From positions 256,859 through 320,858 of the IMG/VR virus record IMGVR_UViG_3300041411_000080: 64,000 bases of DNA, one strand, 5' to 3'. The translations under genes and the position numbers were made by a program. The notes under the pieces were generated by a model that worked only from the letters and a program-made list of their open reading frames with translations, did no database searches and had not been told where the DNA came from. Positions 43,853-63,912 of this stretch are shown here, one piece after another; the first letter of the stretch is position 1, and each line of letters begins with the position of its first letter.

Positions 43853-45016
43853 ATGTCCAAAGTAGATCTCCCGATTAAAATCTTCAATGCTAACAAAACC
43901 GACTACGACTCCAAAGAGATCATTCTGGGTCAAGAACCGGGGCTGTTCGATTCGATCAACAATCACCACCCCGTACTCTTCAACCTTTATAAGCGTTTGA
44001 AGATGATGGACTGGGATGAGAACGAATTCCCTTATGCTGACTGCCTGCATGAGTTTGAGACTTGTGACCGTACGTCTTACGAGATGATGATCAAGACTCT
44101 GGCTTGGCAATGGGAAGCTGACGCTACTGCTTCACGTTCGATCATTAACGTGTTGGCTCCAGTACTAACTGACTCGCGTGTATTCGCGGGCTACAGTCTG
44201 ATCACCAGTAACGAATGTCTGCATGCTCTGACTTATTCGGAGATCGTGCGTAACTCGTTTAAGAATCCTCAAGTGATTCTGGATGAGATCCTGAAAGTAC
44301 AAGAAGCTCAAGAGCGTCTGGTAACTGTAGCTAAGGTAATGGGTGAAGCACACGACGCTTCTCATGCTTACGCTTGCGGCACTATCCCGAATGATCAAGC
44401 TCTGTACAACAAGATCTTCAAGTTCCTGCTGGCTCTGTACTACCTTGAGCGTGTTCAGTTCATGGCATCGTTTGCTGTGACCTTCGCCTTCGGTAAGATG
44501 GGTCGCTTCCAACCGATCGTAATGGGCGTTCAGAAGATCGCTATCGACGAGTTCGAAGTACACGCTCAGTTCGGTCAAGAAGTTATCAAGGCTCTGCTGA
44601 AAACAGAACGTGGCCGTCTGGCTTACGAACAAACCAAAGAAGAAGGCACTAAGCTGTTCTGGGAAGTTCTGATGTCGGAAGTTCGCTGGTTGATGTACCT
44701 GTTCTCTGAAGGTCGTGAGCTGCCGGGTGTAACGCTGAAGAAGATGATCCAATGGGTCCTGTTCAACGGTAATGCTGCTGGTACCTTCACTGGCCACAAA
44801 GACATGCTGACTGAAGAGCATGCCGCTGAGTTCTTGGCGATCACTGGTTTCGAACTGGAATGGCCTGAGAAGAACCCACTCCCGTACATGACCGAATACC
44901 TCGATCTTGCTGCAAACCAAACCAGTCCTCAAGAAGTAGACAATAACCAGTACATGGTTAACGCTCTGGACACTTCCAACGAACAAGCAGAATTCGAAGT
45001 CGACTTCCTCGATTAA
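43853..45016 (+). CDS. nrdB: ribonucleotide reductase class Ia beta subunit
   Basis: W in MMDWD, EAD, ECLHALTY (ExxH plus radical Tyr), YLE..QF..SF, DEFEVH. Confidence 0.95.
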   Translation: MSKVDLPIKIFNANKTDYDSKEIILGQEPGLFDSINNHHPVLFNLYKRLKMMDWDENEFPYADCLHEFETCDRTSYEMMIKTLAWQWEADATASRSIINVLAPVLTDSRVFAGYSLITSNECLHALTYSEIVRNSFKNPQVILDEILKVQEAQERLVTVAKVMGEAHDASHAYACGTIPNDQALYNKIFKFLLALYYLERVQFMASFAVTFAFGKMGRFQPIVMGVQKIAIDEFEVHAQFGQEVIKALLKTERGRLAYEQTKEEGTKLFWEVLMSEVRWLMYLFSEGRELPGVTLKKMIQWVLFNGNAAGTFTGHKDMLTEEHAAEFLAITGFELEWPEKNPLPYMTEYLDLAANQTSPQEVDNNQYMVNALDTSNEQAEFEVDFLD

Positions 45017-45017
45017 C

Positions 45018-45040
45018 ATACTTTCTTGTAATAGTATGTA
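45018..45040 (+). promoter_or_regulatory. ATACT-N8-ATAGTATG promoter-like element
   Basis: Contains the phiKZ late-type TATG; shared with three other ncRNA units. Confidence 0.55.
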
Positions 45041-45150
45041 ACGGAAGCGATAACGTTACTCCATTAGCTCCCTTGTGGAATGCATGATGGTTCTCCTTTA
45101 GTGTTGGTTTGTGGGTTGGTAAAGTTCCTCCCTTCGGGGAGGACTTTATT
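45038..45150 (+). ncRNA. candidate small RNA with anti-SD/anti-start segment
   Basis: Promoter, about 110 nt with no + strand ORF, then a terminator; CATGATGGTTCTCCTTTAGTG segment. Confidence 0.45.
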
Positions 45151-45151
45151 T
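45121..45151 (+). terminator. terminator
   Basis: TCCTCCC-UUCG-GGGAGGA followed by CTTTATTT. Confidence 0.85.
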
Positions 45152-45176
45152 TGCCTCGAGCTTTAAGGATTCAAAA

Positions 45177-45401
45177 ATGATTGTTATTAGCGAAGACCGA
45201 TTAGCCCTACAGCAAGGAATCTATGACGATGTATTGTCAGATATCCTACCTGTGGTTAAGGCTAAGTGTAAAGGTGTTGCTCGGATCATAGTAGTCAAGC
45301 GAAAGCTTACTCCTACTGAAACTGAGTTCACTTGGATATTCAAAGGCACCAACAACGAAACCGAAGTTTACCATACATTCACAATTGAAGGAATGCAATA
45401 A
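45177..45401 (+). CDS. hypothetical protein
   Basis: 74 aa; AAGGA SD. Confidence 0.7.
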   Translation: MIVISEDRLALQQGIYDDVLSDILPVVKAKCKGVARIIVVKRKLTPTETEFTWIFKGTNNETEVYHTFTIEGMQ

Positions 45402-52313: not shown

Positions 52314-53021
52314 ATGATTGAATTAATGTTAACGGTCCCTAAGCCAGTGGTCAACCCTTGGCCGGCAGGTATCCCTGGACCGCAGACCATAGCTACAGGT
52401 GATCAGAATATCGGTTTCTTTGGTGAAGTGTCGGGTACTGATTTTATTACTTACCCTGATCTACAAACCGCAGTTGGCTTTACAACTGGCAACGCGATGA
52501 ACCCGACTGGTGGATGGCTAAAACTAGCTTATAAAGGGAACGTCCAGTTCATCTCTAAACTTAGTGTTAGGAACAACGTTTCTTGGGCAGCTATGAATAC
52601 GCTGGGTATTGTATCAGCCGCTCAGAATAAATTGATTACTATTAAAGGTAAGGTTTACCGTCTACGCCTGATAAATGGTGTCAATGTCGACCCGTATCCA
52701 GTTAACGCCGATGATGCCACTGGTGGACCATACACAACTGGTACTGAATGGAACCATCTTATCTATGGATTGCTATCAACCGCAGTTGGTGCACAGAACC
52801 TAGAGGGTCCGGCGTTGGCCACCTACGGTACTACTGATTTGGGACTGTCTCCATTTGGCAACGGTACGAGTATCCTTGTTAAGGAACTGGGTCCGGGTCC
52901 AGTGTCTATGGTTCGTGGTAACGCTAGTGGTGCTGTGCGTGGACTTTATCGTTATGCAGCGCTAGCTAACGCGGATACGATCCGTGGATGGAAACCTGTG
53001 CTGGAATACGTCAGCGGTTAA
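52314..53021 (+). CDS. putative virion protein, GWRPVLE family
   Basis: MIELM start; GFFGEV..DFI; WLKL; EWN.L.Y; GWKPVLEYV. Confidence 0.7.
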   Translation: MIELMLTVPKPVVNPWPAGIPGPQTIATGDQNIGFFGEVSGTDFITYPDLQTAVGFTTGNAMNPTGGWLKLAYKGNVQFISKLSVRNNVSWAAMNTLGIVSAAQNKLITIKGKVYRLRLINGVNVDPYPVNADDATGGPYTTGTEWNHLIYGLLSTAVGAQNLEGPALATYGTTDLGLSPFGNGTSILVKELGPGPVSMVRGNASGAVRGLYRYAALANADTIRGWKPVLEYVSG

Positions 53022-53024
53022 ATA

Positions 53025-53047
53025 ATACTTTTGTTGCAATAGTATGT
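53025..53047 (+). promoter_or_regulatory. ATACT-N9-ATAGTATG promoter-like element of the tRNA cluster
   Basis: Same signature as 45018, 56179 and 63245. Confidence 0.6.
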
Positions 53048-53120: not shown

Positions 53121-53207
53121 GGAGAGGTTCCCGAGCGGCTCAAAGGGACCAGACTGTAAATCTGGCGTCTATCGACTTCCAAGGTTCAAATCCTTGTCTC
53201 TCCACCA
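53121..53207 (+). tRNA. tRNA-Tyr (GTA)
   Basis: GGAGAGG/TCTCTCC acceptor, CCAGA-CT-GTA-AA-TCTGG, long variable arm, GTTCAAATC, encoded CCA. Confidence 0.96.
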
Positions 53208-53225: not shown

Positions 53226-53390
53226 ATGAAGGTTAAAATTAATCCCCGCCCATTAGTCAACCATGGTCCAGCTGATTGTCGCTGTTGCTCACGGTTGAAC
53301 TGGAAGGATCTTAAACTTGATAAGCAAATTCTCAAAGAAGCTGTAAACGATGCTGACTACGCCCTCAGCAAACGTGAACAGCGTGCATAG
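53226..53390 (+). CDS. 54 aa protein inside the tRNA cluster
   Basis: GAGGTG SD; MKVKINPRPLVNHGPADCRCCSRLNW...QRA. Confidence 0.6.
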   Translation: MKVKINPRPLVNHGPADCRCCSRLNWKDLKLDKQILKEAVNDADYALSKREQRA

Positions 53391-53474
53391 TTACATGATT
53401 CTTGCAGCGGCTGCGCCTGAGTAAATGCTGTCTTAACTTAACGTTACGGCGTTAGGAGAATCACCCAGTTACAT

Positions 53475-62546: not shown

Positions 62547-62741
62547 TTAGTCGATATAGTAACGGTAAGCCAGTCGGTCCACAGTGGTGATAAACCCAAT
62601 ACCGGGTTGACCTTCAGTTTGAGACATGTTGAATCTGGCGATGCCTACCAGACGTAACTGTACTGGATGACGCCGGTAATTTTGGAAGAGCGGGTTCCTT
62701 ACCGTACGGTAAAGCTTTTCGAGTTCATCTTGCAATGTCAT
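62547..62741 (-). CDS. hypothetical protein
   Basis: 64 aa; AAGGAG SD. Confidence 0.7.
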   Translation of the reverse strand: MTLQDELEKLYRTVRNPLFQNYRRHPVQLRLVGIARFNMSQTEGQPGIGFITTVDRLAYRYYID

Positions 62742-62756
62742 ACTTGCTCCTTAAGA

Positions 62757-62790
62757 CGAAATAAAGCCCCCGCCAGATGGCAGGGGGCTT
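62757..62790 (-). terminator. terminator of the large ncRNA
   Basis: AAGCCCCC.GCCA/TGGCGGGGGCTT followed by TATTTCG on the minus strand. Confidence 0.8.
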
Positions 62791-63224
62791 GGGCTATAAT
62801 CTAACTACTACGTGCTGGCCAGCGCAACCCCCAGCGTATGCAGAGGTATCGCAGTTGTCAGTCGCTACTACTTACCACCCACAAACGCGTATGGTTTCGT
62901 AACTTCGCTATCCACAGTGAGTACCAATCAAAGGGATAACGCTTCGGTTCGACCATTGGTGATGGTCACTATGTTCTTCACAAGACAATATCCGAATATG
63001 GGTATTGCTTCACGTATACCGAAAGTTCAGTTATGCTAGGCGGAGTTCGATCAAGGCACCCAAGTTGTTGCTTATGGTGACGGGGACCCTACTTGGGGAG
63101 ATGACCCTTGAGAACTCCTTTACTGTTAGGATCACTGCCAAAGCAATGTTCCGAAAGTTGGAGCCCGCGATCTGGGGTGTTGCCAATGGAAGGCATGATG
63201 ATCACGGGAGGAGCATTCACTCCT
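62791..63224 (-). ncRNA. unknown structured ncRNA of about 440 nt
   Basis: Long gap with no minus-strand ORF; nested stems with G.U pairs that work only on the minus strand; bounded by promoter and terminator. Confidence 0.65.
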
Positions 63225-63245
63225 ATACTATTACACTGAGAGTAT
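63224..63245 (-). promoter_or_regulatory. ATACT-N9-ATAGTATA promoter-like element
   Basis: Same signature as the tRNA-cluster promoter. Confidence 0.55.
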
Positions 63246-63632
63246 TTATTTATTCAACAACTCATTGTATCGTTTGAGTCGAGCACGGGCACGTTGCAAG
63301 ACACCGAAGAGAAACCACTCTACGCAAACAACCAACGCAAGGTATGCGGCGAGCAACCACTTCAACAAAATGTGGTCTTCGATCCTTGGAACAATCATGA
63401 TCTTAATCAGATCAGGAAAGATGTTTGGTGGGATACAGACAGCGACGTAGAACATATACGTGATCACCATAAAGATGAACAACATGCTCGCCCAGCGTTT
63501 AGCTTCAAGCTTTACCGTTTCCCACTTACTCAAGTCTTTTGTGGTCTGCAAGGTTAATCTCCAACCATTCAAAGGATTCAACATTCTTAGCTTCTTCGAT
63601 TTTAAGCTTGACCTTGGTAGTCCGACCTTCAT
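63246..63632 (-). CDS. two-TM membrane protein (start uncertain)
   Basis: Two hydrophobic helices; the annotated start overlaps the upstream gene by over 100 nt, so the true start is probably later. Confidence 0.55.
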   Translation of the reverse strand: MKVGLPRSSLKSKKLRMLNPLNGWRLTLQTTKDLSKWETVKLEAKRWASMLFIFMVITYMFYVAVCIPPNIFPDLIKIMIVPRIEDHILLKWLLAAYLALVVCVEWFLFGVLQRARARLKRYNELLNK

Positions 63633-63912
63633 GGTTAACTTGGCTAGTGCGACACCCTACACCGATGGCAAACTTCTTCACAGTTTCATGAATCAGATCA
63701 TGCACTGGATTCCGTTCACCTTCAGCTTTGGGTTTCGACTCAACTTCGTTCCACAACACGATTACAGAGAAGTCTTCCGTCCCCTCGTATTCAACTGGTT
63801 GGTTAACCAAGGACAAGGTGAAATGCTCAAGGTCCTTACTAGCGAACCTTGAGTTGTTTCCGAGCGTATGCCAGTTACGTACTAGGTCGATAATAAGGAT
63901 CTGAGAGTTCAT
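63526..63912 (-). CDS. hypothetical protein
   Basis: 128 aa; GAGG SD. Confidence 0.7.
   Translation of the reverse strand: MNSQILIIDLVRNWHTLGNNSRFASKDLEHFTLSLVNQPVEYEGTEDFSVIVLWNEVESKPKAEGERNPVHDLIHETVKKFAIGVGCRTSQVNHEGRTTKVKLKIEEAKNVESFEWLEINLADHKRLE

Follow-up and report, generated by a model that had tools for sequence, protein, structure and literature searches.

A large structured non-coding RNA of nucleus-forming Pseudomonas jumbo phages

Introduction

Chimalliviruses build a protein nucleus, bring their own RNA polymerases and must move RNA between compartments, yet their RNA biology is almost unexplored. The closest described counterpart of the RNA analyzed here comes from phage phiKZ, where Putzeys et al. 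(bioRxiv 10.1101/2023.10.13.562163; published as PMC10914365) list in their supplement a promoter, P130, classed as a 'middle promoter', with a transcription start site (TSS) mapped at position 263172, and an intrinsic terminator, T119, at 263292. These define TU198, a 120-nt unit holding no gene, accompanied by a read-through unit that reaches 264292 and covers PHIKZ289, while two upstream operons also end at T119. TU198 is tabulated as a '5'UTR-derived' ncRNA candidate, without a name, structure, conservation analysis or function. More generally, Putzeys et al. report two strict read-through modes for most such phiKZ 5'UTR terminators and interpret this arrangement as conditional termination. 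Large structured RNAs of other kinds are also known, including the phage-associated GOLLD and ROOL, of unknown function, as well as OLE, raiA and HEARO. New large RNAs whose folds are supported by covariation, including a tertiary contact, are rare, and most have led to new biochemistry.

Here, we analyzed a 64,000-nt stretch of DNA (hereafter, the window) identical to part of the 320,858-bp IMG/VR contig 3300041411_000080. A sequence-only reading had proposed that the window carries an unrecognized structured RNA of about 440 nt on the minus strand, with its own promoter and terminator, possibly of an undescribed class. We find that this region holds a non-coding RNA gene of about 465 nt, homologous in its core to phiKZ TU198 and shared, in three size classes, by every Pseudomonas chimallivirus examined.

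Results

Anatomy of the locus

The genes around the locus all lie on the minus strand, where a gap without a credible ORF separates the stop codon of a small hydrophobic protein gene (63248-63246) from the start of a 64-aa gene (62741). Two ORFs upstream of the gap, 63526-63912 (gp424 family) and 63246-63632, overlap by 107 nt; the second probably starts at an inner ATG and encodes a ~79-aa hydrophobic protein that is present in phage Viktualia but absent from 201phi2-1. Read on the minus strand, the features of the locus are as follows.

63224..63250 (-): conserved promoter element, AAATACT, then N7, then GTAATAGTATA; the transcript probably starts at the next base, about 63223
63209..63224 (-): P1, the 5'-terminal hairpin (A)GGAG/CUCC(U) with loop UGAAUG
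63164..63208 (-): P2, a 9-bp stem enclosing a variable insert, found only in the longest form
63129..63152 (-): P3 hairpin, CAUUGC/GCAGUG plus outer GG/CC, found only in the longest form
63042..63118 (-): P4, the universal core hairpin, with three stacked stems, an internal loop AUCUC (63102-63098) opposite UG, and an apical loop CCCGUC within 63090-63075
63028..63041 (-): conserved single-stranded linker after P4 (GCCUA...), corresponding to (A/G)CCUAUU in the short forms
62942..63024 (-): P5 three-way junction, closed by UUUCGGU (63024-63018) with ACCGAAG (62948-62942), enclosing P5a (63008-62985) and P5b (62967-62951, loop CACCA)
62906..62941 (-): P6 hairpin, CGUUAUCC/GGAUAGCG, with apical loop UUGGUAC, whose UGGU (62926-62923) pairs with ACCA (62960-62957) of the P5b loop as a kissing loop
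62864..62905 (-): invariant GAAGUUA and the P7 hairpin (GUUAC...GUAGC) with a variable interior
62801..62861 (-): P8 domain, with closing stem CUGAC/GUUAG, a variable hairpin and the conserved hairpin GCU-GGCC-AGC (62823-62814)
62759..62790 (-): intrinsic terminator, stem 62786-62767 followed by CUUUAUUU; the probable 3' end is near 62759
62547..62741 (-): first downstream ORF (64 aa, 201phi2-1 gp425 family)

Every stem proposed in the sequence-only reading is present, namely AGGAG/CUCCU (63224-63220 with 63213-63209), the 9-bp CCCGUGAUC/GAUCGCGGG stem (63208-63200 with 63172-63164), the long arm at 63118-63042, and GCAAUA/UAUUGU, GACCAU/AUGGUC and UUAUCC/GGAUAG. The 9-bp stem contains one G.U pair that would be A.C on the plus strand. 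The minus strand folds to -159.4 kcal/mol, better than all of 100 dinucleotide shuffles (z = -2.83, 0 of 100 as good), whereas the plus strand is unremarkable (z = -0.95, 16 of 100). Four points of that reading require correction. The RNA runs further 3', through the terminator stem and its U run, and by analogy with the mapped phiKZ homolog spans about 63223-62759, or ~465 nt rather than 440. Of the two occurrences of AACTTTCGG that were noted, the one at 63159-63151 is peculiar to this phage, since homologs have CUAUUCAGG there, and only the 3' copy (63027-63019) is conserved, as one strand of a helix. The inner UGCC/GGCA pairing lies in a part of the hairpin whose length and sequence vary. 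Lastly, the promoter is not sigma-70-like, as a sigma-70 scan found nothing upstream on the minus strand; it is a conserved phage-RNAP element.

The region matches no described RNA or protein family

At gathering score, Rfam 15 identifies only three tRNAs elsewhere in the window, and at E<=10 it returns nothing but terminator-like noise in 62600-63400. Four homologs searched at E<=1 likewise gave no family, with the sole exception of a sub-threshold RsmY match at 1665-1773 of L013, a metagenome contig (24 bits against a gathering score of 57, E 0.011), which stems from a GUCAGGA motif plus the terminator and is not shared by other members. ARAGORN finds no tmRNA, only the three tRNAs at 53.1-53.7 kb. 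In six full-length homologs, each of the six frames carries at least four stops, variable columns are spread evenly over the three codon positions (0.54, 0.57, 0.57), and most indels are not multiples of three. None of the ORF pieces, including 62812-63039 and 63005-63277 on the plus strand, the minus-strand pieces and a 93-aa ORF annotated in Viktualia, matches a Pfam or PHROG family. The Viktualia record (PV037725) places two hypothetical CDSs of 93 and 29 aa (2507-2788 and 2868-2957) on top of the RNA; these are not conserved as ORFs and are probably mis-calls, while the other genomes leave a blank gap.

Homologs share one core hairpin and differ in size

A blastn search identified the region, at 72-73% identity, in Pseudomonas phages Viktualia and 201phi2-1, and part of it in Phabio. 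In 201phi2-1, it fills the unannotated gap between gp424 and gp425. Pattern scans added two IMG/VR contigs (L004 and L011) and the metagenome contig L013, together with one chance hit, a Marmoricola terminator; a further member, L016, was found through a neighboring protein. A tblastn search with the 64-aa downstream protein reached only 201phi2-1, and a pattern for the 3' domain in IMG/VR returned only known members plus chance hits in coding regions. The alignment shows blocks of invariant single-stranded letters separated by stems that differ in sequence, the signature of a structured RNA. RNAalifold predicts 116 pairs, of which 38 are kept through changes on both sides in only six full-length sequences. 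These include P2, where pairs 29-36 with 94-101 show AU/GC and UA/CG exchanges, P3, where pairs 117-122 with 127-132 show a UA/AU exchange, and the terminator stem, which varies with compensation. P1 is replaced by GGAAA/UUUCC in PhiPA3 and GGAC/GUCC in PS119XW.

Covariance models of the long arm (R1 and R2) score window 63033-63121 (-) at 107.7 and 90.8 bits, respectively, and reveal a homologous ~80-nt hairpin at the syntenic position, co-oriented with and downstream of the gp423/phiKZ-gp287 and gp424 families, in every other Pseudomonas chimallivirus retrieved: phiKZ, PhiPA3, PS119XW, HPP-Temi, phiLBG22, RVTF4, D6 and Psa21, as well as in further IMG/VR contigs. In phiKZ, R2 scores 263186-263261 at 63.9 bits (E 1e-15), inside TU198, and this is the only hit in 277 kb; P4 also occurs once in the 64-kb window. 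In 20 sequences (19 distinct), 97.4% of P4 pair cells are standard pairs against 69.6% after shuffling, 19 of 23 pairs show changes on both sides, and the covariation score is 0.754 against 0.230 for shuffled alignments and at most 0.12 for partners slid by 1-3 columns. The alignment was, however, fitted to the model, and the sequences are related, representing perhaps 8-10 independent lineages. Notably, what never changes is unpaired: AUCUC opposite UG in the internal loop, CCCGUC in the apical loop, closed by a 3-4 bp stem that itself covaries, and an (A/G)CCUA tail.

The family occurs in three size classes. Short forms of about 120-150 nt, found in phiKZ, Phabio, RVTF4, D6, Psa21 and several contigs, have the promoter, P4 and terminator only. 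PhiPA3 and the PS119XW group have ~385-nt forms with a small 5' hairpin, P4 and a 3' domain. The longest forms, of 465-490 nt, occur in the window, L016, Viktualia, L011, 201phi2-1, L004 and L013, and add hairpins P2 and P3 before P4. Contig L045 (IMGVR_UViG_3300042009_000063, oriented 2380-2790) has the same promoter and P4 but a different ~260-nt 3' extension that keeps ACCGAAG-GAAGU.

The 3' domain has a covarying loop-loop contact

The 3' domain has the same architecture in both long-form clades, although the helices differ in sequence. P5 is invariant in 11 sequences and therefore says nothing for or against pairing, but it closes a three-way junction with P5a and P5b, which form in every sequence with different letters. 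The outer stem of P6 covaries across both clades (AU/GC; CG/GC/UA). An invariant GAAGUUA leads into P7, and P8 forms a second junction, whose architecture all 11 long forms share with different sequences; the stem of its GGCC hairpin covaries. Interestingly, the P5b loop (NCCA) and the P6 loop (UGGN') can pair, and the variable position changes in step, being A:U in six sequences, U:A in L013, and G:C in PhiPA3 and the PS119XW group. Such a covarying loop-loop contact is strong evidence for a compact three-dimensional fold.

Promoter, terminator and inferred transcript ends

The promoter element is conserved upstream of every homolog. In phiKZ, the mapped TSS of P130 is the base after TATG, and by alignment the window RNA should start at about 63223 and end at about 62759. 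The terminator is canonical, with 8 pairs of which 7 are G-C, and its tail fits the phiKZ terminator motif ...GGBYTTATKYYGT (PMC10914365). The RBS of the 64-aa gene lies ~10 nt after the terminator, so this gene can only be expressed by read-through.

The promoter motif (AATACT, a spacer, GTAATAnTAT(G/A)) recurs on the plus strand of the window at 53017-53046, ~75 nt upstream of tRNA-Tyr (53121-53207), which is followed by a short ORF (about 53227-53391), tRNA-Asn and tRNA-Trp, the region extending to 53700. It recurs again at 45010-45038, within 45010-45160 (+), where a TSS near 45038 would be followed by a ~115-nt non-coding stretch and a phiKZ-type terminator just before ORF 45177-45401, making this a candidate leader-derived small RNA unrelated to P4. 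In phiKZ, the motif recurs before two tRNA groups, PHIKZ054 and the p40 leader. A regular expression for the motif is not enriched over shuffles in phiKZ (4 hits against a mean of 5.1), and only the near-exact instances are meaningful. Looser phiKZ matches, with 5 mismatches each, at about 212853 (+), 114922 (-) and 266394 (-) are at a level where shuffled genomes give as many hits; the one at 114922 lies upstream of the published p40 5'UTR ncRNA, and the one at 212853 precedes a GC-rich hairpin in the gap before PHIKZ204.

Downstream genes and possible targets

The gene immediately downstream differs between lineages, being of the gp425 family, a small membrane ORF, or of the gp289 family. 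The gp289-family protein (243 aa; 1330-2058 of L012, from phiKZ), which follows the RNA in phiKZ, RVTF4, Psa21, PhiPA3 and PS119XW, has a weak PHROG match to HslV-family peptidases (E 1.3e-5), and no homolog was detected in the window. The neighboring proteins are of unknown function, and none has a recognizable RNA-binding domain. A search of phiKZ and the window for antisense targets of the invariant loops found nothing above chance.

Discussion

Our analysis supports the sequence-only reading, both in its observation and in its interpretation as a strand-specific, non-coding structured RNA, with the qualification that one small member had already been seen as an anonymous transcript. The family itself, its conservation across at least seven chimallivirus lineages, its covariation-supported fold with a tertiary contact, and the ~385-490-nt forms appear undescribed; no paper among those searched names the leader of PHIKZ289 or describes a conserved RNA here. 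We place it among terminator-delimited, leader-type phage ncRNAs and do not consider it categorically new, because its mechanism is unknown.

Nothing in our data shows the function, and two readings fit the anatomy. The one we favor, with roughly even confidence, is a gene for a stable RNA that the phage's own RNA polymerase transcribes from a promoter of the phiKZ 'middle' type and that ends at the intrinsic terminator. In this reading, P4 is the functional core and a recognition module for a trans-acting partner, most likely a protein, with invariant loops held on stems that are free to covary. Some lineages have added a compactly folded 3' domain made of two three-way junctions locked by a kissing loop, and the 201phi2-1-like lineage has also added two 5' hairpins. 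We propose that the terminated transcript acts in trans as an RNP scaffold or decoy, whereas the fraction of polymerases that reads through carries the same RNA as the 5' leader of the downstream operon. The presence of a single P4 copy argues against a general transcription signal, and the variable downstream gene argues against a gene-specific leader; the elaborate 3' domain, the strong terminator, with no conserved alternative pairing seen on inspection of the alignments, and a promoter motif shared with tRNA genes also support this view. On the other hand, no partner is known, discrete expression has been measured only for the phiKZ member, and the RNA always sits 10-35 nt upstream of co-oriented ORFs that have no promoter of their own, so a purely cis role is not excluded. 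The main alternative, which we hold as possible but less likely, is a cis-acting leader in which P4, alone or with the added domains, acts on the transcribing polymerase or the nascent transcript to set read-through, as a processive-antitermination RNA or a factor-dependent attenuator, the abundant short RNA being a by-product. The order promoter, structured RNA, terminator, RBS holds in every member, phiKZ has both terminated and read-through forms, and P4 is conserved whichever gene follows it, as expected if its partner is the transcription machinery. However, P4 is single-copy per genome, a 465-nt fold with a kissing loop is far more than known put or nut elements need, and we saw no conserved antiterminator pairing between the RNA body and the terminator in the alignments inspected; a GGGGGUU match to the terminator's CCCCC in the window is absent from Viktualia and 201phi2-1. 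There is also no similarity to any Rfam leader or antiterminator.

The remaining readings appear unlikely. A riboswitch-like sensor of a metabolite, ion or tRNA would suit a long, tertiary-structured leader ending in a terminator just before an ORF, and the NCCA:UGGN' covariation superficially recalls the T-box contact with the tRNA acceptor end, but both partners lie inside the RNA, no conserved expression platform is visible by inspection, the short forms lack the whole 3' domain yet keep the same context, the downstream genes vary and have no known metabolic function, and no Rfam riboswitch or T-box matches. Size and tertiary complexity, phage carriage and the promoter type shared with tRNA genes would also fit a ribozyme or a self-assembling multimer in the manner of ROOL, GOLLD or OLE, and all window-clade, PhiPA3-type and PS119XW-type long forms carry a hairpin with a self-complementary GGCC loop. 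Yet the core P4 alone persists in many phages, no known ribozyme or large-RNA family matches even at E<=10, and in L045 the two halves of the GCUGGCCAGC palindrome (CACUGG...CCAGUG) are, as read by eye, separated by about 21 nt, which fits an ordinary intramolecular hairpin better than a dimerization site. Least likely is a protein-coding gene, a pseudogene or a DNA-level element such as an origin or binding-site array. The Viktualia annotation and the 75- and 90-aa plus-strand ORFs of the window support it, against broken frames in every homolog analyzed, strand-specific folding, compensatory changes that preserve RNA pairing and a mapped phiKZ transcript.

More speculatively, and with low confidence, the 465-nt RNA and its ~385-nt PhiPA3- and PS119XW-type relatives may form a new class of complex-folded RNA specific to nucleus-forming phages, in which P4 would bind the phage transcription, RNA-export or translation machinery and the accessory domain would have an activity of its own, such as ligand sensing, catalysis or higher-order assembly, making it an RNA-based regulator of the phage nucleus life cycle with no counterpart among known RNAs.

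Compared with described systems, the RNA falls in a size range similar to tmRNA, RNase P RNA, 6S RNA, and group I and II introns, which are also stable structured RNAs, but none of these is detected by ARAGORN or Rfam, and the flanking ORFs are separate, complete genes with homologs rather than a split host gene. Like HK022 put and lambda nut, it is a structured RNA right after a promoter and before a terminator that guards an operon, but it has no sequence or structural similarity to them, occurs once per genome, and the polymerase is a phage multisubunit enzyme. With transcription-attenuating riboswitches and T-box leaders, it shares a long structured leader ending in an intrinsic terminator next to an RBS and an NCCA/UGGN covarying contact, which here is intramolecular. 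GOLLD, ROOL, OLE, raiA and HEARO are likewise large non-coding RNAs with conserved multi-helix folds and tertiary contacts, but the helix layout is different, and this RNA is smaller, is modular around one small universal hairpin, and has so far been found only in Pseudomonas chimalliviruses, complete genomes of non-Pseudomonas chimalliviruses not having been scanned. Finally, phiKZ TU198 is homologous, with the same synteny, promoter motif and terminator type, but measures 120 nt against ~465 nt and consists of P4 only, without P1-P3 or the P5-P8 domain.
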